From positions 62,001-126,000 of the IMG/VR virus record IMGVR_UViG_3300042308_001616: a stretch of 64,000 bases of DNA; one strand, 5' to 3'. Positions within the stretch are counted from its first letter, which is position 1; each line of letters opens with the position of its first letter. The notes below the pieces were generated by a model that saw only the letters and a program-made list of their open reading frames with translations, was not told the origin of the DNA and did not search any database. Positions 325 to 22,344 of the stretch are shown here, piece after piece. Made by a program: the position numbers and the translations under genes.

Positions 325-1107
325 ATGGATCAAACAATGTATCAACCAAGTGAGGGGATTAAGTTCACCTACATCATAGCATACAGACATAGCTTAGACA
401 GATACCTTAATTTAAAAAGAGTTTTAGATTGGGTAAATGGTTTCAGTGGTTCTGAAGTTATTGTTGTTGAGCAAGACACACACTCCAAAATATCACATCT
501 TAATTTACCATGTAGAGTTATATTTACGAAATCTGATATACCTTTCAATAAATCAAACGCATTCAACGTAGGTGTAAAAGCATCACGTGCTAATATAGTT
601 GTGTTCGGTGATTCTGATTTGATAATGAAACCAGATGAATTCATCGATGCACTCAATGATGTCCAGAATTACGAGATGGTGAATCCTTACCATTCAGTTA
701 TAGACCTTACTGCACAAGAATCTATGCAAGATCTTTCTAATATGGTAAGAATTGATCGACCAGGACGTGGTGAAACTGATATACAGAAGGTTCCTTTGTG
801 TGGTGGTATTTGTATATTCCGAAAAGATGCCATACTAAAAATTGGAGCATGGTGTGAAGACTTTATCGGGTGGGGTGGAGAAGATGATTTCCAATCAGTT
901 AAGGTAAAGAATTTCTTAAGTTGGGTTGAAAGACCAAATAGATGTTACCACCTTTTTCATGAAAGGACTGCACCGGATATGAAATGGTATCAAAGAAACC
1001 TTCAGTTATTACAAAAATTGGGATCTCTTTCTAAAGAGGATTTACAAAGACATATAATGACAAGTGCACCTAAGATTGGTTTAAAAAACAAATATGACAA
1101 TTTCTGA
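325..1107 (+). CDS. GT-A glycosyltransferase (GT2 / GT7 C-terminal, galactosyltransferase-like)
   Basis: IIAYR...VIVVEQD, FNKS..FNVG, DSD (DxD) and GWGGEDDF motifs. Confidence 0.85.
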   Translation: MDQTMYQPSEGIKFTYIIAYRHSLDRYLNLKRVLDWVNGFSGSEVIVVEQDTHSKISHLNLPCRVIFTKSDIPFNKSNAFNVGVKASRANIVVFGDSDLIMKPDEFIDALNDVQNYEMVNPYHSVIDLTAQESMQDLSNMVRIDRPGRGETDIQKVPLCGGICIFRKDAILKIGAWCEDFIGWGGEDDFQSVKVKNFLSWVERPNRCYHLFHERTAPDMKWYQRNLQLLQKLGSLSKEDLQRHIMTSAPKIGLKNKYDNF

Positions 1108-1709
1108 TGGAAATTATAGAACCAAATCCAAGGCTATTAGAATATATAGCAGACGCATCATCATTATTTACTGACTTTGATGGTGCCCGTCGTGAGTTCA
1201 TTGAAAATGAAGAGTGGCATTATATACAATCCGAATTAGAACAAAACATATATCTTTTGAGTAGACTTGAAGAGAAAAAGTTACTACCTGAAAAGGTAGA
1301 CGTATTCGATTGTGGAATCGGTCTGGGTACTACTATGTTTGATCTTTATCTTCAGTCTAAAGATATGTTAGGGAAGAATTTTACATTTTCAGGAGTAGAG
1401 AAACATGATAGGTATTCAGACTTTCTTGAACAGAAATTATTACATTATTGGGATGGTAAACTAAATCTATATAGAGGCGATATAATGGATCGAGATTATA
1501 CTTCGTATAATATGGTTTATACTTATTCGCCTTTTAAAACTGTTGAAAAGTTAGAAGACTTTTATAAAAAAGTGGTTAGTGAGATATCATCCGGTTCTAT
1601 TATAATAGAGTCGAGGAATTGTGGAAAAGGTTTCGCTGAAACATTGTCACGTATACCTGGTCTCGAGGAGATAGAAGTAGATTGTATTTTTGTGTATAAA
1701 AAGAAATAA
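1107..1709 (+). CDS. Class I SAM-dependent methyltransferase
   Basis: VFDCGIGLG glycine-rich motif I, GVE motif II, GDIM, YTYSPF; start overlaps the GT stop. Confidence 0.75.
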   Translation: MEIIEPNPRLLEYIADASSLFTDFDGARREFIENEEWHYIQSELEQNIYLLSRLEEKKLLPEKVDVFDCGIGLGTTMFDLYLQSKDMLGKNFTFSGVEKHDRYSDFLEQKLLHYWDGKLNLYRGDIMDRDYTSYNMVYTYSPFKTVEKLEDFYKKVVSEISSGSIIIESRNCGKGFAETLSRIPGLEEIEVDCIFVYKKK

Positions 1710-1738
1710 AAAATGCCGACGTAATGTCGGCATTTTTT
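1708..1738. terminator. Bidirectional intrinsic terminator
   Basis: AAAAAATGCCGAC-gtaat-GTCGGCATTTTTT between convergent genes. Confidence 0.85.
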
Positions 1739-1739
1739 A

Positions 1740-2279
1740 TTAAACCATCTCCACTCGGAGTTTTTCATATTTTGTAAGTAGTGCATACATTCTTTCCCAC
1801 TCAGTATTAGGATCTTTCACAATTCGTTTACACCATTTATTGTTATTCAGATATTCTACAATCATTCCGGGTTTGATATCAGATTTACTTTTAGGTAACC
1901 AATACCTAGTTTTCTCAACAAATGAGAACGATACCCCATTATGTAGGTATGATTTGTTCTTAGAATCCGTATTGAACATAATAATACCCATTGGTCTTTC
2001 ATCACCACTATTGAATATTTTTCTCGGTTCAGTCTCACCTACGTATTTTATTATGGCACACTCTTGTGTATGTTCATCGAGTAATCTCAATACATCAAAT
2101 CGAAGTTCGTCGTTATCCACGGATTTATATGCTAAAACAGAGTCCTCGAAAATACCTTCATAATATCCCTGTATAGGTAATATTTGGTATTCTTTTGCCC
2201 AGAGAACCGATGTCAATGCGTCCATATTCTCAGAAGAGATTATGACATATGATGTATTAGGTTGTTCCAATGCGCTCAT
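1740..2279 (-). CDS. Hypothetical protein
   Basis: 179-aa ORF, TAATATATA motif just upstream, ends at the terminator. Confidence 0.75.
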   Translation of the reverse strand: MSALEQPNTSYVIISSENMDALTSVLWAKEYQILPIQGYYEGIFEDSVLAYKSVDNDELRFDVLRLLDEHTQECAIIKYVGETEPRKIFNSGDERPMGIIMFNTDSKNKSYLHNGVSFSFVEKTRYWLPKSKSDIKPGMIVEYLNNNKWCKRIVKDPNTEWERMYALLTKYEKLRVEMV

Positions 2280-2283
2280 GCGG

Positions 2284-3513
2284 TTATATATTAATATTCT
2301 CTGACGCCTTTTTAATTATACCAAATTCTTCATATAACCTAAGATTGAATATGGCTTCTATACTATCTCTGTGTCTAAAAGGTACTATGATACTATCATG
2401 TACGGTTGCCATTTTAACATCTGGCATTTGTTGCATCACATTCTTAACTATTCGGTTGAACAATAATGAAGATTCTGCCTTCTGTAATTCGTAAGCAAGA
2501 ACACGATAATCACCTTTTTCTTTTTTGTATAACTTTATGAAGTTGTGTATAGTTGGAAATAGTGAAGAGAAAACTTTATCTGCCTTACAACTATGAGCAT
2601 TCTTACCGAAAAGTACTCTATATGTCATCTCCTTTACTACCGATCTGTCATTATTACCGGTGGCATCCATTACATATTGGTAATAAATTCCATTTATAGT
2701 GAGATATTTGAAAAGTTCAAATTCATCCTGTTTTACCCATTTAGTACCGGAACTCTCAATCACTTTTGTGAGAAAGAGTGGCTGACTATTTTTTATGTCT
2801 ATCTCATGTGTAGGTTCTCCGTCTATGAGTAGGCACGTTTTGCGTATGAACGATTTAAGTATTGTGAAGTTTGTGTGCATCCTACCATAATTATCAAAAT
2901 GATAAAATATATGTTTGTCACCAATACACTCTACAGAATATACATTTCGGTTGTATATGTCTCCGTCAAAGTCTTTCAAATTATCTAAGTAGAATATTGC
3001 GGCAGATTGGTCTATCTCTACGTGAAATAAATCATCGACCAACTTCGCTTTAACATCTGCGTGTATAAGATCCGATCCTATATCGCCGTCTTCTACACGA
3101 GAGACACTATTCTTATATTTTCTGAGTAGTGTTTTGTCACGGTTTGAATACCTTAGTATCTTACCTTTTAGTACTTCGGAACAAATACTATATGATCGGG
3201 AGTTTCTTCCTGCTAAATAGTTTGACCTCATCTCTATCAATCGATTATCGACCAACCAGGATATGTAGTGGTTATAAAGATGGCCGTACTTCTCTTTCAA
3301 TATCGATGAATGAAGACTAAATTTGTTGTCTTTTTTGAAATAGTATTTTAGTATAAGACCGTGTATTATATCAACTAAGTAGGCCGTTTTTATTTTTTTA
3401 TTGTTGTGTAGTATAGTTTTACAATCAACTAAGTATTGCATTTTGACTGGAAGGAATTGTAGTGTACGTTCCTTCAATTCTAGTTTTTCTCTTATACTAG
3501 TTACCGATTCCAT
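2284..3513 (-). CDS. Family A polymerase-like protein (PolA / T7-RNAP superfamily palm) with N-terminal HTH-like region, no exonuclease
   Basis: YGRMH, EIDIKNSQP (motif A Asp), RSVVKEMTYRVLFG (motif B R..K...Y...G), TVHDSII (motif C). Confidence 0.65.
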   Translation of the reverse strand: MESVTSIREKLELKERTLQFLPVKMQYLVDCKTILHNNKKIKTAYLVDIIHGLILKYYFKKDNKFSLHSSILKEKYGHLYNHYISWLVDNRLIEMRSNYLAGRNSRSYSICSEVLKGKILRYSNRDKTLLRKYKNSVSRVEDGDIGSDLIHADVKAKLVDDLFHVEIDQSAAIFYLDNLKDFDGDIYNRNVYSVECIGDKHIFYHFDNYGRMHTNFTILKSFIRKTCLLIDGEPTHEIDIKNSQPLFLTKVIESSGTKWVKQDEFELFKYLTINGIYYQYVMDATGNNDRSVVKEMTYRVLFGKNAHSCKADKVFSSLFPTIHNFIKLYKKEKGDYRVLAYELQKAESSLLFNRIVKNVMQQMPDVKMATVHDSIIVPFRHRDSIEAIFNLRLYEEFGIIKKASENINI

Positions 3514-3685
3514 ACAACTCCTTTATTTTACTAACTCTATTCACTGCACGAAAAACACTAGTAATTGTGTAACTTTTAAAGTCTATTTTCAGACCTTCGA
3601 AGGTCTCACGTGTACATTCTGCACGTAGCGGTTTTATTTTCGAGGTTACTTCTACCTCTGACATATTTAGTTCTATGTTGTCCAT
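3497..3685 (-). CDS. Small hypothetical protein
   Basis: 62-aa ORF overlapping the start of the polymerase-like gene on the same strand. Confidence 0.5.
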   Translation of the reverse strand: MDNIELNMSEVEVTSKIKPLRAECTRETFEGLKIDFKSYTITSVFRAVNRVSKIKELYGIGN

Positions 3686-3719
3686 ATTTTTTATATGTTA
3701 TCGTTGTCGTTTGTTGCCA

Positions 3720-3744
3720 AAAAAACCCGAATGTGTCGGGTTTA
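3720..3744. terminator. Hairpin / probable terminator
   Basis: AAAACCCGA-atgtg-TCGGGTTT at the end of 3742..3939. Confidence 0.55.
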
Positions 3745-3939
3745 TATGTTGATGATGTTGTAATAAACATCTGGATACTTTATCTCATTTCTATCATTTG
3801 GATCGTATTTGAATCCTTTTTGATTCTTCTCGTCAAACAATCTGTTTGATTCGACAAGCTTCTCCATTGTAGGAGTTTTTGTTGGCTTTATAGACTGTAG
3901 CTCTCTGTGCCAGAAATCGTATCTCTCGTAGTCGTTCAT
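3742..3939 (-). CDS. Small hypothetical protein
   Basis: 65-aa ORF directly after 3943..5262 and followed by a hairpin. Confidence 0.5.
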   Translation of the reverse strand: MNDYERYDFWHRELQSIKPTKTPTMEKLVESNRLFDEKNQKGFKYDPNDRNEIKYPDVYYNIINI

Positions 3940-3942
3940 TTT

Positions 3943-5262
3943 CTATATTGTTTTTTCACCAATTTCTGGTTTTCCACCTGGTGTTGGTTTTTTCTTTTTC
4001 TTATCTGATGCACCTGCTTCAATTTCGGAATATACGTCTGGATAGACTTCACCTGCAGCGTCTGTGTCATATTTAATATCAAAGAAGTCTCCGAAGTCAA
4101 GTAGTCCTGCTCTGGCTAATTCAACCTCACTAGCTCTTCCGAGATGTTCGTCAACCATTCCGGATAGGTCATCAACGAATCTGTTGAATAAAGAAACTGT
4201 ACTATCTGTGAATACTCCTATTGGTCTTTTTTTCTTTTTGTTGAATGATCCAAGTATTACTTTGAATATGTACTCTAATTTACTATTTTCTTCCAAATAC
4301 TCTTTAGTTGTTCTATTATCAACCAACGATTTATTTATTCTGAATTTGTCTTTATCGAAAAATTCAGGTATGGTAAATTCAAAATCTAACAAATCTTCTT
4401 TGACTTCTGCCAGATAAAGGTTGTAAAGTCTACAAACTAAACTAAGGTATACCTCTTCACGGTTGTTACCTCTAATTTTAACATCACGTATTTGTATAGA
4501 TTGACAAAAGTTTAGAAAGTTTATCAATATAAGTGTGTATATCTCAACAAAGTCTGTTGAGTTTGTTTCACTAACTCTTTTATATAAAGGGTTTAGTAGT
4601 TCAAATGATGTATCACCTGAAGTGAGTCTGAATATTAGTTTTTCTACATTCCTCTGGAAATCTCCATTCATAAGAAAAGAAGATTCTGTTGCAGGGTTTA
4701 ACATTTTGTAGAAAAAGAATGTAAAGTTTTTCTCACCAAAAACATACTCGAGATCATCTTCACTGGTATTCAGAAAATACTTTATAGCCTCAATCATTCT
4801 TTCCGTCAGTCTTCCTTGAAATACTACCGGAATCATCTCAACATCAATCAGTCTGGCATATTCTGCTAACTCCTCTATGTTGAAATCATATTTTCCACTT
4901 TTATGTATTCCTGTTATAACAAGACCATTTTTGGGAATTCTATCATATTCGATATTGGCAGGTTGATTATCTGGAAAATACTCAAAACAAAACCACCATT
5001 TTTTGTTCAATAGAGATTTAACACGTGTGTCGAGTGATTTGAAGTATTCAACCCCTGGGTTGTAATAGTTCTGCATTGCTAAGTCTACAAGGTTGATTGG
5101 TTCACTACTTAGTGATTTTGGTTTTATCGTGAATTCTGTACCATTCCAGTTTACCCATATCTTACTACCCTGTATATCTTCGAGTACTATTAGTTCTTCA
5201 TTGAATAACGAGTTCAGTAATTGTTCACTTTCCGACTCGTTCATATTTATGAGTTTGGCCAT
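3943..5262 (-). CDS. ATP-dependent RNA-ligase-fold protein, probably catalytically inactive
   Basis: LEDIQGSKI aligns with ligase motif I (EKxxG[ST]N) with Lys replaced by Asp; FCFEYF, IPVVFQG and EKLIFR resemble the later motifs. Confidence 0.5.
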   Translation of the reverse strand: MAKLINMNESESEQLLNSLFNEELIVLEDIQGSKIWVNWNGTEFTIKPKSLSSEPINLVDLAMQNYYNPGVEYFKSLDTRVKSLLNKKWWFCFEYFPDNQPANIEYDRIPKNGLVITGIHKSGKYDFNIEELAEYARLIDVEMIPVVFQGRLTERMIEAIKYFLNTSEDDLEYVFGEKNFTFFFYKMLNPATESSFLMNGDFQRNVEKLIFRLTSGDTSFELLNPLYKRVSETNSTDFVEIYTLILINFLNFCQSIQIRDVKIRGNNREEVYLSLVCRLYNLYLAEVKEDLLDFEFTIPEFFDKDKFRINKSLVDNRTTKEYLEENSKLEYIFKVILGSFNKKKKRPIGVFTDSTVSLFNRFVDDLSGMVDEHLGRASEVELARAGLLDFGDFFDIKYDTDAAGEVYPDVYSEIEAGASDKKKKKPTPGGKPEIGEKTI

Positions 5263-5291
5263 CTTTGATTTATGTTTTTTATCAGATTAGG

Positions 5292-5301
5292 TTATATATA
5301 A
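5292..5301. promoter_or_regulatory. Putative late promoter (TTATATATAA) between divergent genes
   Basis: Self-complementary copy of the TATATA motif that recurs upstream of more than 20 genes. Confidence 0.55.
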
Positions 5302-5333
5302 AAAACCATCCATCAAATGTTTATATAATGTTT

Positions 5334-7448
5334 ATGAAAAAGTTGATGATAATTGTACCACATCTATCTACCGGTGGACTTCCACAATACGTGGCTAAAC
5401 AAATAGAAATGTCGTGTGGTGAGTATGAAATATGGTGCGTTGAATGGGACAGTATAACTGGTGGTGTTCTTGTTGTACAACGGAACAAAATACAAAATCT
5501 TATTGGTACCGGACTCGTAACATTGGGAGAAGATAAAGATGAATTTTTACGATTATTAGATGATGTTTGTCCGGACATTATACATTTCCAAGAGATTCCG
5601 GAAACTTTTATACAGAGGACAATACTTGATGATGTTTATAAAGATGATAGACATTGGCAAATATTGGTGACGACTCACTCTTCGTATACAGAACCTTCTA
5701 ATATATCTTATGGTGCAGACAGATTTGTATTAGTTTCGGACTGGAGTAGGAGACGTTTTGCATCTGTATATGGTGACGATAGGTGTTCAATTTGGGAATA
5801 TCCTGTGGAAAAGAAGGTATTTGATAAAATTTCAGCGAAGAAGAAATTGGGATTTGAACTAGATAAGGTACATTTTCTACATGTTGGTTTATTCACACCT
5901 GGTAAAAATCAGAAATTGATTGTGGATGCTGCCAGATTATTACAATCGATGGATAATATACGAGTACACTTTGTGGGTAATCAAGCTGAAAATTTTAGGG
6001 ACTACTGGGAACCAATTATGGCAGACTTTCCGTTGAATTGTACTTGGCATGGCGAAAGACACAACGTTGATGATTTCTATAAAGCCGCGGATGTTTTTCT
6101 TTTTCCATCTCTATTCGAACTAAATCCACTTTCGTTGAAAGAGGCATCAGGATTTGGACTACCAATAGCACTCAACAAATTAGAAACATATGATGGTGCG
6201 TGGGACAATTGCGTTGATTTACATATGGATCCGGAAGGTGCGTCACGTGTTATGTGTGAAATGGTGGAATCGGTTAGTGGTTTTTTTGACGGAACACTAT
6301 ATGGTGAGTCTACTAAAATGACAGATATTGTAAGGAGATTAGATCCTTTGATAAGTATAAACTTCATAAATGGACCTTATGTAGAAGTCAATAATGCACC
6401 TGGAGAAGAATTTGACTTAACAATAACTGATAGAAAAAGTGGATTTGTTGTTTATGGAACAACAATTGGGAATGGATGTTGGGCACGTGCTAATTTGATG
6501 TATGTTAGAGATTGGAGAATAAGATTGGTACGTAAATCGGATGGTAAGGAATTTATAAGAGATTTCGATCCTAATGGTAAAAGAGTTTTTATATCTCTGG
6601 AATCTAGGTCAATTGGTGATACTCTAGCTTGGTTTCCACAGGTTGAAGAGTTTAGAAAGAAACATGATTGTAAAATCGTATGTTCTACTTTTTGGAATGA
6701 ACAACTAAGTGGTCAATATCCTGAGATAGAGTTTGTTTCACCCGGTAGTGTTGTTGATAACATATATGCTATGTTTAGTATTGGGTGGTTTTTTGATGGT
6801 GATTCGTATTGTCCGAGAAGACATCCACGTGACTTCAAAAATCTTCCATTGGGACAGACTGCAGCAGACATACTCAACATTGAGTATAAACAGGAGAGAG
6901 CTAGGTTGGATGTATCGAATGTTATAAAATCACGTAAGGTTGGACTTGGAATTCACTCCACTGCACAAACCAAATATTGGAACAATCCAACCGGATGGCA
7001 GGATGTTACTAATTTTCTAACTAAGATAGGATATGAGGTTATTATACTATCCAATGAGGGTGATGGTTATATGGGTAATAACTATCCGTCGGGTGCGTCT
7101 GTATTACCATCTGGTAGTTTTGATCGACTCAAAGAAGAGATGGTTAGTTGTGAACTTTTTATTGGTATAGGATCAGGTCTAAGTTGGTTATCATGGACTC
7201 TTGGAGTACCTACCGTACTCATATCGGGTTTCAGTCGTCCTGAATCTGAGTTTGAGGGAGATGGTGTTCTTAGAATATTCAATGAAAGTAGTTGTAATGG
7301 ATGTTACAATAGATACAAATTCAACGCAGGTGATTGGAATTGGTGTCCGGACCACGCAGGAACGGAAAGACAATTTGAGTGTACAAAGTCGATAACCGGA
7401 AGACATGTCATAGCAAGAATGATTGAAGAGGGTTTTGTTCATATATAA
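5334..7448 (+). CDS. Fusion of a GT4 glycosyltransferase and a TibC/AAH-like protein O-heptosyltransferase
   Basis: N-half: HVGLFTPGKNQ, ADVFLFPSLFELNPLSLKEA (GT4). C-half: ISLESRSIGDTLAWFP, GIHSTAQTKYWNNP, FIGIGSGLSWLSW, and Cys cluster CNGC...WNWCP...FECTKSI. Start moved from 5265 to MKKLMII. Confidence 0.85.
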   Translation: MKKLMIIVPHLSTGGLPQYVAKQIEMSCGEYEIWCVEWDSITGGVLVVQRNKIQNLIGTGLVTLGEDKDEFLRLLDDVCPDIIHFQEIPETFIQRTILDDVYKDDRHWQILVTTHSSYTEPSNISYGADRFVLVSDWSRRRFASVYGDDRCSIWEYPVEKKVFDKISAKKKLGFELDKVHFLHVGLFTPGKNQKLIVDAARLLQSMDNIRVHFVGNQAENFRDYWEPIMADFPLNCTWHGERHNVDDFYKAADVFLFPSLFELNPLSLKEASGFGLPIALNKLETYDGAWDNCVDLHMDPEGASRVMCEMVESVSGFFDGTLYGESTKMTDIVRRLDPLISINFINGPYVEVNNAPGEEFDLTITDRKSGFVVYGTTIGNGCWARANLMYVRDWRIRLVRKSDGKEFIRDFDPNGKRVFISLESRSIGDTLAWFPQVEEFRKKHDCKIVCSTFWNEQLSGQYPEIEFVSPGSVVDNIYAMFSIGWFFDGDSYCPRRHPRDFKNLPLGQTAADILNIEYKQERARLDVSNVIKSRKVGLGIHSTAQTKYWNNPTGWQDVTNFLTKIGYEVIILSNEGDGYMGNNYPSGASVLPSGSFDRLKEEMVSCELFIGIGSGLSWLSWTLGVPTVLISGFSRPESEFEGDGVLRIFNESSCNGCYNRYKFNAGDWNWCPDHAGTERQFECTKSITGRHVIARMIEEGFVHI

Positions 7449-7480
7449 AAAAATCCGAGATAAATTATCTCGGATTTTTT
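7447..7480. terminator. Bidirectional intrinsic terminator
   Basis: AAAAAAATCCGAGATAA-a-TTATCTCGGATTTTTT between convergent genes. Confidence 0.85.
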
Positions 7481-7495
7481 ATTATAAAAATTTTA

Positions 7496-8269: not shown

Positions 8270-8285
8270 AATTTATATATTTTTT

Positions 8286-8675
8286 TTAAAAATCAATTTT
8301 TACACTCACTTCATTTATGAATCGAGTGAATTCGTTTACGGTAACCTTAATTTCTTTTGTAGGTTCCTTTATTACGTCGTAGTCAACTCCTCTAACACGA
8401 CAATATAACTTTATAATTTTCTTTGTATTTTCTTCACCAATGTCTTTTGACATCTGCATCCATGGATTTCCCTTTTCATATTCCCCTCTGTATGCACCAC
8501 CTCCGTGTCTAATACTTTTTATTTCGAGTAATATGAAGACTTCGTCCCATGTTAGATCAACGTTTTCCCATTTCAGGGTAACTTCTTCCCACTTTAGGTA
8601 TTTTTTACCAGCAGAAACCTCGTCGTTTGTCCAATTTAGGTCTGTGTTTAGTAGGTTGGAATGTATTAGAGGCAC
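8286..8675 (-). CDS. Hypothetical protein with Trp-heptad repeat
   Basis: GTG start; KWEEVTL-KWENVDL-TWDEV; TAATATATA upstream. Confidence 0.65.
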   Translation of the reverse strand: MPLIHSNLLNTDLNWTNDEVSAGKKYLKWEEVTLKWENVDLTWDEVFILLEIKSIRHGGGAYRGEYEKGNPWMQMSKDIGEENTKKIIKLYCRVRGVDYDVIKEPTKEIKVTVNEFTRFINEVSVKIDF

Positions 8676-8742
8676 GTTTATTCTTTTTTGTCTTATATAT
8701 TATTAAAACGTGGTTGGACTCATGATAGTTAATATATAAAAC

Positions 8743-12324: not shown

Positions 12325-12371
12325 GGTGTTAGTCCATTTTAATATATACCCAAAAGAAAAAGGTAAACCTT

Positions 12372-15300: not shown

Positions 15301-18300
15301 AGGTACTAACCGATTTAACACTTCCAACGACCGGAATAGATCCAACCAACAGAATGCTTGTAAGCATATATTTGGATAACAAGGATTCGAATTCAAGAAC
15401 GGTTCAATTTCACACAGAAGGAACGGATGATTATTCTTATGTCATAACGTCTGTTGGTGTTGTGAATGGAACTTCTGGGTCTTCCGGTTCAAGTGGTTCT
15501 ACAGGAACTTCCGGATCTTCTGGCTCATCCGGAACTTCTGGAACTTCTGGAACGTCTGGTTCTTCCGGTAGTGCAGGATCATCAGGTACAAGAGGTTCAT
15601 CCGGGTCATCAGGAACTTCTGGTTCATCGGGAACTTCTGGTTCGTCTGGAACATCTGGAACTTCTGGTTCGTCTGGAACATCAGGTTCGTCTGGTAGTTC
15701 TGGTTCATCAGGAAGTTCTGGTTCGTCCGGAACATCTGGAACATCTGGATCTTCTGGTTCGTCTGGAACATCTGGATCTTCTGGTAGTTCTGGTTCATCA
15801 GGAACTTCTGGTTCGTCTGGAACTTCTGGTTCGTCTGGAACTTCCGGTACTTCGGGTTCTTCCGGTACTTCGGGTTCATCTGGAACTTCCGGTACTTCGG
15901 GTTCTTCTGGAACTTCTGGAACATCTGGTTCATCAGGTACTTCGGGCTCTTCCGGAACATCTGGTTCATCAGGTACTTCGGGCTCTTCCGGAACATCTGG
16001 TTCTTCTGGTAGTTCCGGTACGAGAGGATCATCGGGTTCTTCCGGAACATCTGGGTCATCCGGAACATCTGGGTCATCCGGAACGTCTGGTTCTTCCGGT
16101 TCATCTGGAACTTCTGGAACATCCGGTTCTTCCGGTTCGAGTGGGTCGTCCGGGTCTTCCGGGTCTTCTGGAACATCTGGTTCTTCCGGAACGTCTGGTT
16201 CTTCCGGTAGTTCCGGTACGAGAGGATCATCCGGTTCTTCTGGATCATCGGGAACTTCCGGGGTAAATGGAATCGACTCTGCGAGTTTTGAGTACACTTA
16301 TAGTACAACGACCACTGCGTCGGATCCTGGATCAGGTTTCTTCAGACTAAACAACCTAACTATGGGTAGTGCGACCTCACTTTACATAGACAGATTTGAC
16401 AGAAATGGTAATAACGACTTACAAAACTTCTTCAGTTCGCTTACAAACTACGGTTCGACAAATAGACGAGGTTTCATAAAGATAACTAAACAGAACGACC
16501 TTACATGGTTTCAGACATATGAATTTAGTGCGACAACCGATAACACAGGATGGTGGACGATTACCATAAATAACGTAATACTCGATGCCAACTTTACAAA
16601 CAACGATTTGTGTTTTATCAGTTTCAATGTTTCAGGACCAACGGGAACAAGTGGGAGTTCAGGAACATCTGGTTCTTCCGGTTCATCTGGAACTTCCGGT
16701 ACTTCGGGTTCTTCTGGAACTTCTGGAACATCTGGTTCATCAGGTACTTCGGGCTCTTCCGGAACATCTGGTTCATCTGGAACTTCCGGTTCTTCCGGAA
16801 CGTCTGGTTCTTCTGGTAGTTCCGGTACGAGAGGATCATCGGGTTCTTCCGGAACATCTGGGTCATCAGGAACATCTGGTTCGAGTGGGTCTTCAGGAAC
16901 ATCTGGTTCTTCCGGTTCATCTGGAACTTCTGGTTCGAGTGGGTCTTCAGGAACATCTGGTTCTTCCGGTTCATCTGGAACTTCTGGGCCATCCGGGTCT
17001 TCTGGGTCATCTGGAACATCTGGTTCTTCCGGGTCATCTGGAACATCTGGTTCTTCCGGGTCATCTGGAACATCTGGTTCTTCCGGGTCATCTGGAACAT
17101 CTGGTTCTTCCGGGTCTTCTGGGTCATCTGGAACATCTGGTTCTTCCGGGTCTTCTGGGTCATCTGGAACATCTGGTTCTTCCGGTAGTGCAGGATCATC
17201 AGGTACAAGAGGTTCATCCGGGTCATCAGGAACATCTGGTTCTTCCGGGTCTTCAGGAACATCTGGTTCGAGTGGTTCTTCCGGCACTTCTGGATTACTA
17301 AGTCTAACAGGTTCAACTGATAATGGTGTTATAACTCTCAATGGTTCCATTCCAAATGCTATAGTTGAAAGTAATCTTACATTTGATGGTAGTATACTAA
17401 ATGTGACTGGTCGTATTATTGCATCCGCATCAACTTCTACGGACCTTTTAAGACTAACACAAGTAGGAACAGGAAACGCTTTTGTTGTAGAGGATAGTAC
17501 GAATCCGGACATTACCCCGTTTGTTATACAGGGTGATGGAAAAGTCGCCATAGGAACTTCTTCCACCGTTGCAAACTTAGAGGTTAGAGCCAATGGTGCA
17601 AACGGTATATTACTGGGTCAAGATCTTGCAGCGAGTGGACAATCGAGTAGACTTTTCTTCAGCAACGGAACAGACGGACAACACATAGCAATACTCAATT
17701 CAAATAACGGAGGATTCGATTTCAGAACTCTATCAACTGCGAATGTTTCCACTGGAACTCAAAGGATGACAATTGCAGCAGGTGGTGATGTCTACATAGC
17801 ACAGTCCCTCGGAATAAACCAACCAACACCTACTGCAAAAATACATGTGGTACCTGGTTCAACACAATCTGGTCTTATAGTTGCAGGTAATAGTGATCAA
17901 GATATGGTCAGGATAACACAGATAGGAACAGGTAACGCAATTATTGTTGAAGATAACACGAATCCAGACTCAACACCTTTCGTCGTTGATGCATCAGGAA
18001 ACATAGGTGCAGGAACCGCATCACCATCAACAAAATTACACGTATTCTCTACGACGAGTGGTGCTATAAGAATAGTCGACGGAACACAGCAGAATGGATA
18101 CGTACTTACATCCGATGCAAACGGGTTGGCAACATGGCAAGTATCATCTGGTGGTGGTTCATCACTGAGTGGTACAATCAACTACGTTCCATTCTACAAA
18201 ACAACCACAACACTATCATCTACGAGTTCGATACAGGTCTCTGGTGATACAGTCGGAATAGGAGTTTCATTCTCAAACACCGGTGGACCGAGTACAGACT

Positions 18301-19673
18301 ACAGACTGCACGTAAACTATGGATCTGGTACCTACGGTGTTCTAATTGAAGGTGGTGGTGGAATTTCCGAAAACATACCACTTAGATTATGGGACAGTGG
18401 AACAGGTACAAACAATATAAATATTTTAGAGTTTGGACACGCAACTGCGAGTCCTAAACTATATGTTCCGGGTGCACGTATAAAATCTACAAATCCTGGT
18501 TCCGGTGCAACAACAGGAGCTCATTTAATATTAGAAACTTCGTCAATATCAAATCCAACATCAACAACTTGGAATACCAATCAACTCTATTTGAGAAATG
18601 ATGGAAATGTAGGTATCGGAACAAATACACCAACTTCATATTTAACAATAAACACACCAGGTGGTTCATTGTATAGTGGTGGTTCTACAGGGGAACATGC
18701 AATATTAATAGGTAGTCAGTCCACTGGTTCTGTTGCTGCATATATAGGAACCGACGAAACACTTTCCGCGATGTACATACAATCTGGTATAAGAGGTGGT
18801 GCCGCAACTCCTATACTACTAAACGCACAGGGTGGAAACATCGGAATCGGTGTGACATCACCTTCTGCAAAATTACACGCAGTAACTAATGTATCATCAA
18901 TTCCGTTGATAATAGCATCCGGATCTACAACGGTTGATTTGGTGAGAATAACGCAGGTCGGTACAGGAAACGCTTTTGTGGTTGAAGATGCTACAAATCC
19001 AGATACCACACCATTTGCTATAACCAACACCGGAAAGGTAAAGGTTGGAACGACCGTCGATTCAATCTATTCATCCAATATATATTCGATATCAACGACA
19101 TATGGATTAGAGGCATATGGTGATTTAGCAGGAGTATACGCACGAGGATTAACTTATGGAATTGTAGCAGAAGCGGCTACTGATGGAATGGTAGTTGCAG
19201 GTATTATGGCATCTGCAACAAACGACCAATTTATGTATGGAGTATACTACGGTGGAATGTTCTCGGCAAACTCATCAAATGGTGTCAATTACGCGGTAAG
19301 GTTACAGGATGGATCACAAGGATTGAACAAAGTTCTGGTGGACACCATAGGTGACGGATCTGCCAACTGGAAAAGTGATCTGAGTATAACATCAATCATA
19401 GCTTCTGCATCAAGTACTTCTGATATAGTAAGAATCACCCAAACCGGAACAGGAAATGCGTTAGTCGTTGAAGATTCAACAAATCCAGATGCAACACCTT
19501 TTGTTATAACATCTACGGGAAATGTTGCAATAGGAACACAATCTACAAATAACACACTACACGTACAGGGTTCTATGGAACTCACCGGAACATTCTCGGG
19601 TAGTAATTCTAATTTCGTAGATGCAAACCTTATAACACAAACCGTTCTACTCTATATGTCGAACAACACTTAG
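12372..19673 (+). CDS. Giant fibre-like structural protein with five Ser/Thr-rich Gly-X-Y tracts
   Basis: 2433 aa, TTG start; long (G-[ST]-S)n tracts between globular domains; four RITQxGTGNAxxVEDxTNPDxTPF-type modules and GxVGIGT repeats typical of phage fibres. Confidence 0.8.
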   Translation: MARNPKYQIRNLSTDGYGRLVQVVNGVYYDGFGNILSIGSVGSSGIIGGSSGTSGLSGNSGSSGSSGTSGLSGNSGSSGTSGSSGYSGTSGSSGTSGVSDKYKTTTVHTMPVPSVDDIILLESLDTGLAYTVGQSIILAESAYDYLEGIVQSYSPITGDMYVIVKYVVGSPDGPDFTINIDGTTGSSGTSGSSGISGSSGSSGTRGSSGSSGSSGISGSSGTSGSSGESGSSGISGSSGISGSSGTSGSSGESGSSGISGSSGTSGSSGESGSSGTSGSSGSSGASGTSGSSGESGSSGTSGSSGSSGASGTSGSSGTSGSSGSSGSSGTSGSSGESGSSGTSGSSGTSGSSGSSGTGFDTISNPSDNRLLTSDGTTNAAVAESNLTFDGSLLTMIGSSNFGTSSGTQNLYGSVISNDSFSIGTQQFFPQGNNGFSVNENFDASNSTSQTAYHFTSGSNTKNIVFTLAKTGEYTTVFGTDGSSTSNKFVIGSETSNTVFQFKSGLGIQPINLDGGSVMFEVATNSLFAPNIPSGTTETDILVRDGSGYITYRSDLSLSGTSGSSGSAGSSGTSGSSGSSGSSGSSGTSGTSGTSGSSGSSGSSGSSGTSGTSGSSGSAGSSGTSGSSGSSGSSGTSGTSGSSGSSGSSGTSGSSGTSGSSGSSGSSGTSGSSGSSGSSGTSGSSGTSGSSGSSGTSGSSGSSGSSGTSGSSGTSGSSGSSGTSGSSGSSGTSGSSGSAGSSGTSGSSGSSGTSGSSGSTGSSGSSGSAGSSGSTGSSGTSGSSGSSGTRGSSGSSGSTGSSGSSGSAGTSGSSGTSGSSGSAGTSGSSGSAGTSGSSGSSGTSGSTGSSGTSGAQGPQGISAGQIYYFNMSMTASVNGYRSLSTTPLPNGGTYSIETLTGNESGHLVETFMTDPLGFSIIPGGTQRFHLHFLKGAVGDDIEAYVSIRLSDSVGVPIGPTLSSNKQYIGWNDSTTNVEVLTDLTLPTTGIDPTNRMLVSIYLDNKDSNSRTVQFHTEGTDDYSYVITSVGVVNGTSGSSGSSGSTGTSGSSGSSGTSGTSGTSGSSGSAGSSGTRGSSGSSGTSGSSGTSGSSGTSGTSGSSGTSGSSGSSGSSGSSGSSGTSGTSGSSGSSGTSGSSGSSGSSGTSGSSGTSGSSGTSGTSGSSGTSGSSGTSGTSGSSGTSGTSGSSGTSGSSGTSGSSGTSGSSGTSGSSGSSGTRGSSGSSGTSGSSGTSGSSGTSGSSGSSGTSGTSGSSGSSGSSGSSGSSGTSGSSGTSGSSGSSGTRGSSGSSGSSGTSGVNGIDSASFEYTYSTTTTASDPGSGFFRLNNLTMGSATSLYIDRFDRNGNNDLQNFFSSLTNYGSTNRRGFIKITKQNDLTWFQTYEFSATTDNTGWWTITINNVILDANFTNNDLCFISFNVSGPTGTSGSSGTSGSSGSSGTSGTSGSSGTSGTSGSSGTSGSSGTSGSSGTSGSSGTSGSSGSSGTRGSSGSSGTSGSSGTSGSSGSSGTSGSSGSSGTSGSSGSSGTSGSSGSSGTSGPSGSSGSSGTSGSSGSSGTSGSSGSSGTSGSSGSSGTSGSSGSSGSSGTSGSSGSSGSSGTSGSSGSAGSSGTRGSSGSSGTSGSSGSSGTSGSSGSSGTSGLLSLTGSTDNGVITLNGSIPNAIVESNLTFDGSILNVTGRIIASASTSTDLLRLTQVGTGNAFVVEDSTNPDITPFVIQGDGKVAIGTSSTVANLEVRANGANGILLGQDLAASGQSSRLFFSNGTDGQHIAILNSNNGGFDFRTLSTANVSTGTQRMTIAAGGDVYIAQSLGINQPTPTAKIHVVPGSTQSGLIVAGNSDQDMVRITQIGTGNAIIVEDNTNPDSTPFVVDASGNIGAGTASPSTKLHVFSTTSGAIRIVDGTQQNGYVLTSDANGLATWQVSSGGGSSLSGTINYVPFYKTTTTLSSTSSIQVSGDTVGIGVSFSNTGGPSTDYRLHVNYGSGTYGVLIEGGGGISENIPLRLWDSGTGTNNINILEFGHATASPKLYVPGARIKSTNPGSGATTGAHLILETSSISNPTSTTWNTNQLYLRNDGNVGIGTNTPTSYLTINTPGGSLYSGGSTGEHAILIGSQSTGSVAAYIGTDETLSAMYIQSGIRGGAATPILLNAQGGNIGIGVTSPSAKLHAVTNVSSIPLIIASGSTTVDLVRITQVGTGNAFVVEDATNPDTTPFAITNTGKVKVGTTVDSIYSSNIYSISTTYGLEAYGDLAGVYARGLTYGIVAEAATDGMVVAGIMASATNDQFMYGVYYGGMFSANSSNGVNYAVRLQDGSQGLNKVLVDTIGDGSANWKSDLSITSIIASASSTSDIVRITQTGTGNALVVEDSTNPDATPFVITSTGNVAIGTQSTNNTLHVQGSMELTGTFSGSNSNFVDANLITQTVLLYMSNNT
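12920..17295 (+). repeat. Coding Gly-Ser/Thr-Ser triplet tracts (about 12920-13440, 14040-14950, 15465-16265, 16640-17295)
   Basis: 9-bp-period degenerate repeats (GGN-TCN/ACN-TCN/AGT) with Gly at every third residue. Confidence 0.95.
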
Positions 19674-19716
19674 TGAAGGAAGACCATCATCGTAATATAT
19701 AAAAGAAAAAACGAAG

Positions 19717-20151
19717 ATGGCAAACAACCTAACGTTCACAAGTGCTCCCTTCCTTCAAGGATTAACCGCATCATCTGCGAACTCTTCCACAAACACCAGG
19801 TACACTATACTGACGGCAGATGCTACCTACGACCGTAGAATATACGGAATATCAATTGTTAATACATCCGCGGCTTCTGCACAAACAGTAACAATATGGT
19901 TAAACGATGGAACCGTTTCGTATCAAGTATTCGTACTAAACGTGCCACTAAGCTCGGGTAACTCTACCACGGTTGCGGCAGTGGATATAATGGGCTCTGT
20001 CTACGGTGCATCAGTACTTCAAAAACAGAGAGATGCTAACGGAGTACCTTATTTCAACCTACCTAAGACCTGGTCTGTACAATACCAGTATAACACCGCA
20101 CTTTCTACGTCTGCATTGTATCTACTCGTCTTCGGAGAAACTTACGCATAA
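19717..20151 (+). CDS. Fibre-associated small structural protein, paralogue 1
   Basis: DRRIYGISI..LNDGT..SGN..DANGVPYFNLPKTWS domain shared with the next two genes. Confidence 0.75.
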   Translation: MANNLTFTSAPFLQGLTASSANSSTNTRYTILTADATYDRRIYGISIVNTSAASAQTVTIWLNDGTVSYQVFVLNVPLSSGNSTTVAAVDIMGSVYGASVLQKQRDANGVPYFNLPKTWSVQYQYNTALSTSALYLLVFGETYA

Positions 20152-20153
20152 AA

Positions 20154-20585
20154 ATGGCAGGAGCACTGACTTTTACATCCGGTGCATTTATGCAATGCAC
20201 GGTTGCCACCTCATCAACAACAGGTGGTACTATATACGACATACTAACCGCAACTTCTTCTGTGGACAGGAGAGTTTATGGTTTGTCAATAGTTAGTGTC
20301 GATAATGGTGCAAACCCCGTGAAAATATATCTAAACAACGGAACAGACAATATACAGGTTTGTAACGTAAATATCGTGGCAAACTCAGGGAACGCAATAG
20401 CAACTGCACTTACTGACGTATTCTCTAATACTATGGGAGAAGCAGTACTGGCTAAAACCAGGGATGCTAACGGGGTAACCTATTTCAACCTACCAAAAAA
20501 CTGGTCGATAAGAATGTCTTTTTTGACTACACACGGACTAAGTACCGAGAAGATATACACATTTGTGTTTGGAGAAAACTACTGA
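20154..20585 (+). CDS. Fibre-associated small structural protein, paralogue 2
   Basis: DRRVYGLSI..LNNGT..NSGN..DANGVTYFNLPKNWS. Confidence 0.75.
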   Translation: MAGALTFTSGAFMQCTVATSSTTGGTIYDILTATSSVDRRVYGLSIVSVDNGANPVKIYLNNGTDNIQVCNVNIVANSGNAIATALTDVFSNTMGEAVLAKTRDANGVTYFNLPKNWSIRMSFLTTHGLSTEKIYTFVFGENY

Positions 20586-20591
20586 TAAGAA

Positions 20592-21452
20592 ATGGCTGAC
20601 CAACTAACACTAACTAACACACCTCACTTATATTGTATATCACTGACATCATCAAGTTCGGCGAATACGGCATACACAATAGTACCCGCCGATTCTACCT
20701 ATGATAGGAGAATATATGGACTAAGTATAACAAATACATCTGCAGTTAACCACCTAGCATGTACACTTTGGTTGAGTAATGGTACAACAGACTTTCAGAT
20801 GGGACTCGTACAGATAAACGCCAACTCAGGAAATAACATCTCAACTGGCGCAACCGACGTTTTCACAAACTCTGTTTTCTCGGGTCTTTTGACGTATGCA
20901 ATGGCAGATAATATGGGTGTTTGGTATTTCAATCTACCAAAAACATGGTCATTGAAGTTCACATACACCAACACACTATCCGTAGGAAACGCAATGACCT
21001 TTACTACATTCGGTGAAAAATATGACGGAGTTACACACCGTTTCACTTCGAAACCATTTCAACAGACTGCAACATTTTCTAATGCTACTGGAACAACCAG
21101 GAAGGATATAGTTAGTAGTGTTGCATACGACAGGAGGATTTACGGAATAGAGGCAACGAGTACCGACACAACTGCAAGAACACTGAGTATAAACTTAAAT
21201 AATGGTACTACAAACTATCTAATTTACACAATATCAGTATTGGCAAACTCTGGTAACTCAACATCGGTTTCTGCACAGGATTTATTCTATGACGCTTTCA
21301 TACAAGGTTTATTTGTAAGAACCGCAGACGCAGAGGGTATATCTTACTACTTCAACCTACCCGCAGGATGGAGCATAAATGGTTCATTCACGGTGGCAGT
21401 AACTGCAGGTTTGCAAATAAACATAAAAACAATCGGCGATACTTATGAGTAG
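20592..21452 (+). CDS. Fibre-associated protein, paralogue 3 (two tandem copies of the domain)
   Basis: DRRIYG...YFNLP.xWS occurs twice in 286 aa. Confidence 0.75.
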   Translation: MADQLTLTNTPHLYCISLTSSSSANTAYTIVPADSTYDRRIYGLSITNTSAVNHLACTLWLSNGTTDFQMGLVQINANSGNNISTGATDVFTNSVFSGLLTYAMADNMGVWYFNLPKTWSLKFTYTNTLSVGNAMTFTTFGEKYDGVTHRFTSKPFQQTATFSNATGTTRKDIVSSVAYDRRIYGIEATSTDTTARTLSINLNNGTTNYLIYTISVLANSGNSTSVSAQDLFYDAFIQGLFVRTADAEGISYYFNLPAGWSINGSFTVAVTAGLQINIKTIGDTYE

Positions 21453-22344
21453 GAATGGTATAAACGATGGACTTAAACAGGGTTGGTTACAGGGTGTGAA
21501 GTCTGGTTTCGGACATTCGAGAATGGAGAATGGTCTAAAGAAAGGTTTAGTAAGTGAATCAGGAATACACACCAAAGTTCAGGATCCGACACTTCTACAA
21601 GGAAACAAACAACCGTCATCATTCTTTATTGCAGATTTTAACACTACAAAAACTGCAGGTACAACGGTTGCAGGACTTACTCAATTGTCACCGGGTAAAA
21701 CTACTTATGTTATTGGTTCTTCACCTGCTTATCAACCTCCTTATTCAGGAAATGGTGGTGTATATAATAATAGAGCATACATTGATTTCAACTCCGGTGC
21801 CGACTCAGTGTCTACAACTAATACACTAATGGGTTTGGGTAAGAATGAACTCACTGTAATGATGGTATTTCGTATATCTAGTGTTACTGACGGAAGAATA
21901 CTATTTTATAGTGTCGATTCAACAATTTCAAGTACAATTGGTGATATACAGATAACAACACAAGGTGGTAACAGAGTTAGAGTATCTTTTATAGGTAACC
22001 CAACGACAACCAGTGCAGTATATGACACATACAATCCACTCGTTGAAGGTTTACATCATTGGCACATACTAACGGTGAAGTTTAGACTTTACCAACCGAA
22101 TGGTCAGGGTTCAGAAGTTGAGATGTATCTTAATGGAAATCTAAATATGAGACCAGTAACTACTACGTTCGGTGCATCAACGGGAAACTTCGTAGGTAAC
22201 ACATTTTATTTCGGTAATAACTCATCAGCAACTTCTGGTGGATCTCAAATTGCCAGTGCGATAACTTTTGATTATTGGTTAAACTCATCCGAGCAAATAA
22301 GAATGGAAAATTTTTACAAATGGTATTATGGTAGGAGATTTTAG
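21445..22344 (+). CDS. Concanavalin A / LamG-like lectin-domain protein (candidate receptor binding)
   Basis: IDFNSG..., TVMMVFR, WHILTV, MYLNG, FYFG, C-terminal IRMENFYKWYYG pattern. Confidence 0.6.
   Translation: MSRNGINDGLKQGWLQGVKSGFGHSRMENGLKKGLVSESGIHTKVQDPTLLQGNKQPSSFFIADFNTTKTAGTTVAGLTQLSPGKTTYVIGSSPAYQPPYSGNGGVYNNRAYIDFNSGADSVSTTNTLMGLGKNELTVMMVFRISSVTDGRILFYSVDSTISSTIGDIQITTQGGNRVRVSFIGNPTTTSAVYDTYNPLVEGLHHWHILTVKFRLYQPNGQGSEVEMYLNGNLNMRPVTTTFGASTGNFVGNTFYFGNNSSATSGGSQIASAITFDYWLNSSEQIRMENFYKWYYGRRF

Follow-up and report, generated by a model that had tools for sequence, protein, structure and literature searches.

TibC and AAH of Escherichia coli belong to the BAHT family of TibC/AAH-type O-heptosyltransferases. 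Enzymes of this family are protein Ser O-glycosyltransferases, not lipopolysaccharide enzymes, and TibC and AAH modify Ser, not Thr (PMC4358343). Their genes lie beside, and often right upstream of, the genes for the long, repetitive, Ser-rich surface proteins TibA and AIDA-I. A second related system is the exosporium nap of Bacillus anthracis and B. cereus, in which BclA's collagen-like region bears dense O-glycosylation and the glycan has a methylated sugar at its end (PMC10050317, PMC6222408). Features of both systems are combined in a stretch of 64,000 nucleotides (positions 62,001 to 126,000) of the IMG/VR virus record IMGVR_UViG_3300042308_001616, hereafter called the window. In this window, the gene for a GT4-BAHT fusion glycosyltransferase precedes the genes for two giant fibre proteins with Gly-X-Y repeats (fibre 1 and fibre 2). 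We consider, with a probability of roughly 0.6, that the window encodes a protein O-glycosylation module together with its probable substrate, namely two trimeric collagen-type fibres. Judging from its occurrence in dozens of unrelated phages, this pairing is probably an undescribed way to build sugar-coated viral fibres; in the literature, no report was found in which BAHT enzymes are connected with phages or with collagen-like proteins.

The fusion enzyme is encoded at 5328-7448 on the plus strand. Its reading frame is open from the TTG at 5265 (727 aa), and the ATG at 5328 (706 aa) is favoured by the gene caller and the homologues; residue numbers given here are those of the 727-aa form. 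The gene ends ~1.3 kb ahead of fibre 1. The GT4 domain, which extends to about nt 6340, matched Pfam Glycos_transf_1 at 7e-13 (PF00534, 48.9 bits with a cut-off of 26.4; PF13692, 42.7 bits). It is apparently intact, as the EX7E motif (E285-x7-E293, nt 6117-6143) is present, and it is 49.7% identical to the GT4 partner of the BAHT enzyme in the viral locus L040. The C-terminal domain (nt 6345-7448) scored 269.4 bits with TIGR04414 (curated cut-off 200) over profile positions 15-370 of 374, and matched the structure of TibC (4RAP) with an E value of 3e-57 over chain residues 41-379. A match of the fusion to Pfam Glyco_transf_9 was also found (3e-5). The GT4 and TibC/AAH-like fusion proposed in the first-pass annotation is thus confirmed in both of its parts.

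Asp452, Thr566, Lys570, and Trp641 correspond to Asp110, Thr226, Lys230, and Trp305 of TibC. The roles of these residues, with Asp110 as the catalytic base, and those of Arg286 and the iron-finger Cys residues have been described (PMC4358343). Across 97 related sequences, the equivalents of Asp, Lys, and Trp are invariant, and that of Thr226 is Thr or Ser. Three of the four residues that bind the sugar donor in TibC (Thr, Lys, and Trp) are thereby kept. In addition, the Cys cluster is intact: Cys677, Cys680, Cys694, and Cys706 align to Cys339, Cys342, Cys358, and Cys370 of the TibC iron finger, and they are invariant in 97 of 97 relatives. The iron finger and its region, which are required for the ring-shaped dodecamer, were aligned to TibC without large gaps. 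The C-terminal domain is a member of the BAHT family in which the catalytic residues and the iron finger are kept. No autotransporter domain was found among the window open reading frames (ORFs) scanned, and the neighbouring repetitive genes are those of the collagen-like fibres. Since the domain is a BAHT by sequence and the autotransporter partner is missing, it seems to be a family member with a new class of presumed substrate.

Fibre 1 (8743-12324, plus strand, 1193 aa) contains 54 Gly-X-Y triplets in tracts at nt 9079-9312, 11224-11340, and 11779-11913 (aa 113-190, 828-866, and 1013-1057). The true collagen triplets noticed earlier, GPQGPTGPQG, are located at aa 46-55 (nt 8878-8907). This protein also has an N-terminal motif in common with fibre 2, a 637-aa globular middle (83% identical to that of the fibre in locus L023), and a C-terminal domain with the sequence NPD.TPF. 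Fibre 2 (12372-19673, plus strand, 2433 aa, TTG start) contains 341 triplets. Its tracts are at nt 12516-12668, 12915-13445, 14046-14954, 15468-16277, and 16635-17300 (aa 49-99, 182-358, 559-861, 1033-1302, and 1422-1643); they are spaced by small globular domains, and the 790-aa C-terminal region has at least three copies of the NPD.TPF module. The non-repeat domains of the fibres have close homologues in other metagenomes (79-97% identity), those of fibre 2 being found in L220 and L234. When searched against Pfam, NCBIfam, and PHROG, the non-repeat pieces gave nothing usable except a weak CBM5/12-like stretch in fibre 1 (nt 8932-9054).

Together, the two fibres have 395 triplets in eight tracts of 13-101 triplets each, with zero register breaks. 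The X position of fibre 2 is Ser in 201 triplets and Thr in 114, and the Y position is Ser in 312 of the 341; the two giant proteins with Gly-Ser/Thr repeats are therefore as first described. The Pfam Collagen matches (1e-18 and 3e-133 for the fibres) are driven by composition. The DNA of the repeats is only ~65-75% identical between repeats, with synonymous codon variation, which argues that the Gly periodicity is held at the protein level. As far as the sequence can tell, the tracts are not an artefact of assembly or of simple repeats.

A jelly-roll domain of the TNF/C1q/BclA-like type is located at aa 867-1012 of fibre 1 (11341-11778), with Gly-X-Y tracts on both sides. It had no family match, and a sequence search of the PDB gave collagen-repeat matches only; the C1q/BclA-like domain claimed in the first-pass annotation is recognised by its predicted fold. 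The AlphaFold2 model, made from an alignment of 8 sequences, had a pLDDT of 85.7 and a pTM of 0.79. Its top Foldseek matches in the PDB were BxpB, BclA, ExsFA, C1QL, and 4-1BBL (E values of 6e-6 to 3e-4, TM scores of 0.45-0.66). The model suggests that this is the probable trimerisation and nucleation domain of fibre 1. The position of a trimer-forming fold class between tracts and the 341 triplets without a register break were counted for a triple helix. If the tracts are triple-helical (0.286 nm per residue), those of fibre 1 would extend over ~46 nm and those of fibre 2 over ~293 nm.

The association of the enzyme with Gly-X-Y genes was examined in IMG/VR. A scan with an alignment of four phage BAHT domains gave at least 553 viral loci, and the 80 best were retained. 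Gly-X-Y repeats were detected in stop-to-stop frames with a minimum of 6 triplets, and a locus was regarded as linked when an ORF with a tract of at least 30 aa lay within 10 kb. The loci are partly redundant, and the enzymes were dereplicated at 80% identity. Genomic coupling of the heptosyltransferase with repeat genes had been set beforehand as the criterion, and it was found: a Gly-X-Y ORF lay within 10 kb in 43 of the 80 viral BAHT loci and in none of the 93 control loci (0/80 for portal and 0/13 for PhoH). It should be mentioned that these controls, about 1.4 Mb in total, come from few lineages, and that the PhoH set consists of 13 close relatives. Because the controls are poor in lineages, positional and composition tests were relied on.

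Among the dereplicated clusters, the link to a Gly-X-Y ORF was found for 23 of 26 with N-terminally fused enzymes and for 5 of 20 with stand-alone enzymes. The nearest Gly-X-Y ORF lay at less than 200 bp in 8 of the 28 linked clusters and at less than 1.5 kb in 17; a uniform spread over 10 kb predicts ~4 clusters within 1.5 kb (p = 4e-8). It was on the same strand as the BAHT gene in 21 of the 28. Several loci have the enzyme followed by the fibre with gaps of 46-161 bp, which is the same arrangement as in aah-aidA and tibC-tibA.

In the phylogenetic tree, viral and environmental enzymes group in a single clade (SH-aLRT 100), to which those of Burkholderiales, Lentisphaerae, and Acetobacter do not belong. 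A Gly-X-Y neighbour is present in every basal branch of this viral clade. The link persists at enzyme identities of 31-55% and across unrelated phage types. The linked fibres differ in their non-repeat domains; therefore, the enzyme-fibre pair is not a single cassette inherited as a block. The pairing also occurs in the 735-kb phage LR756501, in the cultured Microcystis phage Mel-JY01 (PP395634.1), and in contigs of metagenome-assembled genomes (MAGs) assigned to Bacteroidetes, Ignavibacteriaceae, Arenicellales, and others. The coupling is specific, repeated, and phylogenetically broad, and the module is not limited to jumbo phages, the setting in which it had been placed at first.

Some details of these loci may be added. 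The Gly-Thr/Ser-Ser ORF of Mel-JY01 (locus L001, 2-3052, plus strand) exceeds 1000 aa and runs off the start of the linear record; the GenBank annotation of this region has minus-strand hypothetical coding sequences (1-651 and 739-2298) and a short plus-strand one. The 1226-aa protein downstream of this ORF, annotated as "methyltransferase FkbM", is a fusion of GT4, a middle region, and BAHT. In MAG contigs of Arenicellales and Gammaproteobacteria (L290/L322, L292, and L294), BAHT is flanked by Gly-[Ser/Thr]-Ser ORFs of 140-217 aa. In the Lentisphaeria contigs L305/L306, a collagen-like ORF of 634 aa, which is not Ser/Thr-rich, lies 35 bp downstream of BAHT. All of these MAG contigs may be prophages, mis-binned phage contigs, or cellular loci.

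The composition of the linked repeats is also distinctive. As a general sample of viral collagen-like proteins, 115 ORFs were fetched by a composition-blind pattern with Gly at every third codon. The median fractions at X/Y in this sample were 0.19 for Ser+Thr and 0.12 for Pro, and 10 of the 115 ORFs (9%) were Ser/Thr-rich; the sole BAHT-positive locus of the sample is among these ten. By comparison, 40 of the 43 BAHT-linked Gly-X-Y ORFs (93%) were Ser/Thr-rich, with a median Pro of 0 (p = 2e-24). Their median fractions were 0.62 for Ser at Y, 0.44 for Thr at X, and 0.01 for Thr at Y. The presence of Ser and near absence of Thr at Y fits the Ser-only specificity of TibC/AAH. Ser and Thr had both been proposed as acceptors at first. 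Since TibC/AAH modify Ser and not Thr, the Ser residues at Y are the likely acceptors, and the proposal does not seem to hold for Thr in general. Matches to the Gly-[Ser/Thr]-Ser pattern (L226 and L232) and to the general pattern (L358, L366, and L385) were also found on IMG/VR contigs labelled GVMAG. Some matches being on giant-virus MAG contigs, such collagen-type repeats are not confined to phages.

The relatives also give indications on the sugar donor and on the glycan. Split HldE-like genes come after BAHT in 18-21 of the 80 viral loci. Their best NCBIfam matches, TIGR02198 (1e-33) and TIGR02199 (6e-29), are both under their own cut-offs; as these are equivalog cut-offs, the two halves are regarded as relatives and not as proven orthologues. 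The 12 clusters of a derived clade, from T4-like myophages, have the order of a giant tail-fibre-like protein with a Gp53-like C-terminus, two small ORFs, GT4 + methyltransferase, BAHT (286 bits with TIGR04414), an rfaE-domain-II-like adenylyltransferase, and an rfaE-domain-I-like kinase. That the HldE-like genes directly follow BAHT argues that the phage enzymes of this clade use an ADP-heptose-type donor. In L040 (11083-12214), and likewise in L025, L054, L061, L067, and others, the genes right after BAHT encode a 129-aa adenylyltransferase and a 250-aa PfkB kinase; upstream in the L040-type loci, a giant fibre-like protein exceeds 2000 aa and contains Hint/intein and Gp53-like C-terminal domains.

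In public metagenomes, this enzyme branch is represented by more than 5000 protein clusters, and the automatic label of such genes at JGI is "autotransporter strand-loop-strand O-heptosyltransferase". Among these clusters, the BAHT domain is found fused to GT4, FkbM, Methyltransf_24, other class I methyltransferase domains, and PF05637 (presumably Glyco_transf_34). GT2 and CmcI rhamnosyl-O-methyltransferase domains occur in neighbouring enzymes of some BAHT loci, and in L040 a methyltransferase domain is fused to the GT4 partner of BAHT. Because BAHT is fused to, or lies near, such transferase and methyltransferase domains, an extended and methylated glycan is implied.

From these data, we infer that the fibres are substrates of the fusion enzyme and components of the virion. 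In the cytoplasm of the infected cell, the BAHT domain would move a sugar, most likely heptose from ADP-heptose, onto serine hydroxyls, chiefly those of the Y-position Ser residues, before or during trimerisation of the fibre chains. The fused GT4 domain would then add a second sugar, and the methyltransferases encoded nearby, possibly with the GT2 enzyme, would complete the glycan. The chains would trimerise from globular domains such as the BclA/C1q-like jelly roll into collagen-type helices. The resulting fibre would measure hundreds of nanometres, and each of its chains would bear as many as hundreds of short glycans, which would take the place of proline, hydroxyproline, and charge pairs in helix stability and hydration and would form the outermost surface of the virion.

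Several observations weigh against this model, and the first of them concern the enzyme. Arg286 of TibC, which reads the adenine, is not conserved: the column is Val, Arg, Thr, or Leu in the relatives, and the window enzyme has an Arg one residue out of register. The contact of Arg286 with adenine was described as weak in TibC itself (PMC4358343). Pro300, the stereoselectivity position, is Gly or Ser in the phage enzymes. Because of these two replacements, the donor may differ from ADP-heptose. In addition, HldE-like genes for ADP-heptose synthesis were not found in the window and ~16 kb upstream. Furthermore, the known substrates of BAHT enzymes are β-helical autotransporter passengers, whereas the presumed substrate here is a collagen-type Gly-X-Y fibre.

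The genomic arrangement offers further points of this kind, and they bear on an alternative in which GT4-BAHT, GT2, and the methyltransferases act on the host envelope (lipopolysaccharide core or surface proteins) or on other virion proteins. Superinfection would then be blocked or receptors masked, and the fibres would lie near the enzymes merely because both belong to a common variable host-interaction region. The glycosyltransferase and rfaE genes in the tail-fibre hypervariable regions of marine myophages have been interpreted as host modifiers (PMC7029224). In the window, two unrelated ORFs on the opposite strand part the enzyme gene from the fibre genes. In the close relative L031 (IMGVR_UViG_3300042564_005700), the enzymes are present and no fibre gene was found in the 21 kb fetched. 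The 12 clusters of the derived clade lack a nearby Gly-X-Y ORF and lie beside a different giant tail-fibre-like gene. Moreover, among 80 loci with the Gly-[Ser/Thr]-Ser pattern, BAHT was found in the flanks of 6 (the flanks are short, ~8.5 kb per locus). Most Ser/Thr-type collagen ORFs thus have no BAHT in their immediate flanks, and such fibres do not strictly require the enzyme. We nevertheless regard this alternative as unlikely. BAHT enzymes glycosylate Ser of proteins and are not lipopolysaccharide enzymes (PMC4358343), and the Gly-X-Y ORF often follows within 200 bp on the same strand. The link holds in unrelated phage types at enzyme identities as low as 31%, and co-location in a variable island alone would not pick out the Pro-free subclass with Ser at Y (93% against 9% Ser/Thr-rich).

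The composition of the tracts bears on a different question, that of the helix. Pro and charged residues are the usual stabilisers of bacterial collagens. They are scarce in fibre 2, in which 3 Pro and 13 charged residues occur among the 682 X/Y positions, and this counts against a triple helix. The fibres might be glycosylated with the tracts serving as flexible mucin-like or polyglycine-II-type spacers that bear a glycan brush, and the composition-driven nature of the Pfam Collagen matches is in line with this. Such spacers seem quite improbable, however, since the Gly register is strict over as many as 101 triplets despite ~30% divergence of the DNA, and a random coil needs no register. The classic collagen stretch in fibre 1 and the BclA/C1q-type trimeric jelly roll between its tracts likewise favour collagen-type helices, and BclA, with the same architecture, forms a triple helix that is glycosylated (PMC10050317).

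Finally, that the fibres are unmodified, with the BAHT-like domain inactive or in another role and the co-occurrence due to common ancestry of a mobile cassette, is hardly credible: the fibre cassette does act as an insertion/deletion unit between conserved flanks, but the invariance of catalytic and iron-finger residues in 97 sequences across deep branches indicates purifying selection on the active site, the enzyme has repeatedly been fused anew with other domains for sugar handling, it is accompanied by HldE-like genes for donor synthesis, and the differing non-repeat domains of the linked fibres speak against block inheritance.

Two enzymes encoded further upstream in the window had been assigned to glycan elaboration together with GT4. 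The first is a GT2/Glyco_transf_7C-like glycosyltransferase of 260 aa (325-1107, plus strand) with a DxD-type motif, DSD, at nt 610 (aa 96-98). Its scores are just above the Pfam cut-offs (PF02709, 27.2 bits with a cut-off of 23; PF00535, 24.7 bits with a cut-off of 23.3), and it matched phrog_1721, "galactosyl transferase", at 7e-17, so that the GT2/GT7-type assignment stands. Homologues hold the same relative position in L023, L031, and L075. From its family, this protein is a candidate glycan-extending enzyme.

The second is a protein of 200 aa (1107-1709, plus strand) with the fold of a class I S-adenosylmethionine (SAM)-dependent methyltransferase and a motif I-like sequence, VFDCGIGLG (nt 1302-1328). 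It had no match in Pfam, NCBIfam, or PHROG; it has 113 homologues, a few of them with precomputed PF05185, and its profile gave weak matches to the PDB. The AlphaFold2 model, from 24 sequences, had a pLDDT of 93.5, and its top 50 Foldseek matches in the PDB were all SAM methyltransferases (TM scores of 0.43-0.62). The presence of a methyltransferase near the fusion is thus indicated by the fold. No homologue of it was found in the fetched loci of other contigs, and L023 and L075 have a different ORF after GT2. Three unrelated genes on the opposite strand separate GT2 and ORF 1107-1709 from the fusion. This separation qualifies the proposal that GT4, GT2, and the methyltransferase elaborate one glycan; elaboration by further transferases and methyltransferases fits the domain fusions in the relatives.

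A better candidate for the glycan methyltransferase is a protein of 414 aa with FkbM (PF05050) and Methyltransf_24 (PF13578) domains. Its gene (contig ~58707-59951, or 6383-7627 of locus L323, minus strand) lies ~2 kb before the start of the window and 8.6 kb upstream of the fusion enzyme. In 29 of the 80 viral loci, the methyltransferase domain beside BAHT is a homologue of this protein's C-terminal domain. A Dam-like D12 methyltransferase (26076-27008) was also considered as the methyltransferase of the first-pass annotation and was rejected, being a DNA enzyme.

The two ORFs between the fusion and fibre 1 are both on the minus strand: 7496-8269 (257 aa), with homologues at the same position in L023, L074, and L075, and 8286-8675 (129 aa), with homologues of 57-66% identity in the same three loci. 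Neither had a match in Pfam, NCBIfam, or PHROG. Directly past fibre 2, three ORFs (19717-21452, plus strand; 144, 143, and 286 aa) contain four tandem copies of a domain of ~143 aa with the common motifs DRRIYG, NSGN, and YFNLPK.WS. They had no Pfam or PHROG match and no homologue in any fetched locus, and may be fibre accessory or assembly proteins. The last ORF of the region (21445-22344, plus strand, 299 aa) had no family match. Searches of ORFs 1740-5262 and 19717-22344 against Pfam, NCBIfam, and PHROG gave nothing usable.

The relatives L023, L074/L075, and L012 share the order of GT4, BAHT, two small opposite-strand ORFs, fibre, and a homologue of the flank 22562-23350; this homologue comes directly after the fibre in L023, L075, and L012. 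In comparison with these loci, the window has fused transferases, a second and far longer fibre, the four tandem 143-aa domains, and one extra ORF before the conserved flank. In L031 (8977-11743), GT4 (322 aa) and BAHT (611 aa) are split and inverted between the same flanks as in the window, and the BAHT protein bears an unexplained C-terminal extension of ~230 aa. Since L031 keeps the flanks without a fibre, the region 7496-22344 behaves as a variable cassette.

The motif WATATATAM is over-represented in the window, with 36 matches against 5.9 expected, a number reached in 0 of 100 shuffles. Plus-strand copies are located 10-40 nt upstream of the transferase (5293-5301, 27 nt before the start), fibre 1 (8731-8739), fibre 2 (12341-12349), and the first small paralogue (19694-19702), and the protease, portal, and terminase genes also have copies ahead of them. 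The motif probably serves as a phage promoter or initiation element. Its sharing by the transferase and the fibres is compatible with their co-expression and would be no proof of it. Other sites include 8273, 8693, 24522, 37571, 42284, and 57084, usually 10-80 nt upstream of starts on the coding strand, and structural and non-structural genes are preceded by the motif alike. The T4 late-promoter consensus TATAAATA was considered and set aside: with 9 matches where 7.1 would be expected, it shows no enrichment, and the fibre genes have no copy upstream. The capsid gene is preceded by one at a distance of 40 nt (35397-35404, minus strand).

Judging from its structural genes, the window is a piece of a very large T4-like myovirus of metagenomic origin. 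The gp23-type major capsid protein (33645-35357, minus strand) and the T4-type portal (40473-42206, minus strand) were recognised, as were the prohead protease, a gp15-like protein, and the large terminase. In sequence identity, the capsid protein reaches 72-73% with those of LR756502 and LR745206, "uncultured phage" genomes of 635-642 kb, and 53% with those of 636-735 kb genomes. The portal gene matched IMGVR_UViG_3300042308_001616 (248,751 bp) at 100%. The window belongs to this 249-kb contig, and the phage is related to the published "huge phages" of 630-735 kb. A near-identity DNA search of nt 1-8700 against GenBank phages gave no match.

Other genes of the window are of separate interest. 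A full-length exoribonuclease of the RNase II/R type (38038-39972, plus strand; RNB domain at 1.5e-98, with cold-shock and S1 domains) sits between the prohead protease and portal genes, an unusual place and function for a phage structural region. A homing-endonuclease-like protein of 716 aa (31352-33502, minus strand; DUF7487, phrog_3339 at 5e-134) adjoins the capsid gene; it lies in the most AT-rich part of the window, with a GC content of 0.28, and probably represents a mobile insertion. The minus-strand region 26076-29331, on the downstream side of the fibre cassette, contains the Dam-like gene mentioned above and the genes for a NADAR domain protein (27104-27610) and an SPFH/Band 7 protein (28387-29331).

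If glycosylation of the fibres by the fusion enzyme is correct, the BAHT family, known only from bacterial adhesins, would extend to viruses and to a wholly different substrate architecture. A widespread class of phage surface fibres would emerge, with a chemistry of heptose-based methylated glycans on a Pro-free collagen scaffold that is unlike anything described. The habit of reading glycosyltransferase and rfaE genes in tail-fibre regions as modifiers of host lipopolysaccharide (PMC7029224) would need revision. Such fibres would bear on host recognition, virion stability, resistance to proteases and grazing, and the behaviour of the particles in water. Collagen biophysics would gain a natural system for testing whether a triple helix can be held together by Ser-linked sugars alone, and the question is directly testable because the cultured phage Mel-JY01 carries the module. 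A wider and more tentative proposal, which we put forward as a possibility, is that a large unrecognised branch of TibC/AAH enzymes is viral and that its native job is hyper-glycosylation of Ser in proline-free collagen helices. This would be a third route to helix stability, with Ser-bound sugar standing in for hydroxyproline or charge pairs; the E. coli autotransporter enzymes would be a side branch of a family used mainly on collagen-like fibres, and some phages would feed the reaction with their own ADP-heptose.

Compared with the known systems, the phage enzymes share with TibC and AAH the family, the catalytic Asp, Thr, Lys, and Trp, the four-Cys iron finger, the gene position beside a long repetitive Ser-rich protein, and, presumably, the chemical preference for Ser. 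They differ in the residues at positions 286 and 300 and in their separate clade. The fusion to GT4, and elsewhere to methyltransferases, would imply an oligosaccharide, not a single heptose. Giant viruses also have virus-encoded multi-domain enzymes and glycosylated surface fibrils, as seen in the transferase-methyltransferases of chloroviruses and in the fibrils and collagen-like proteins of Mimivirus. The likeness lies in the combination of glycosyltransferase and methyltransferase modules, as in L040, L047, and Mel-JY01; the hosts are eukaryotic, and the enzyme families and the acceptors (Asn and hydroxylysine) are different.

In the cuticle collagen of Riftia pachyptila, galactosylated Thr at Y stands beside Pro. 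This collagen is poor in hydroxyproline, and its stability has been associated with abundant glycosylated hydroxy-amino acids (PMC11766948). The window fibres differ from this animal collagen in having Ser at Y, no Pro, and a probable heptose-based glycan. The comparison drawn in the first-pass annotation with glycosylated Thr of Riftia is therefore a loose one: it holds as a concept, and TibC/AAH act on Ser. Mycobacteriophages are a precedent for O-glycosylation of a phage's own virion structural proteins by phage-encoded glycosyltransferases (Freeman et al. 2023, cited in PMC12619734). In the account given there, the targets are the C-terminal tails of capsid and tail-tube subunits, the enzymes are of other families, and no collagen-like substrate, BAHT enzyme, or heptose pathway appears.

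In architecture, the fibres resemble the exosporium nap, where BclA and the related BclA-type and ExsFA/BxpB proteins likewise provide a collagen-like region and a C1q/TNF-like jelly roll, and where the filament length is set by the repeat number. The repeats of BclA are rich in Pro and Thr, mostly GPT. In BclA, Thr is glycosylated by unrelated enzymes, whereas the window fibres are viral, Pro-free, and ~ten times longer, with Ser at Y as the presumed acceptor of a BAHT enzyme.

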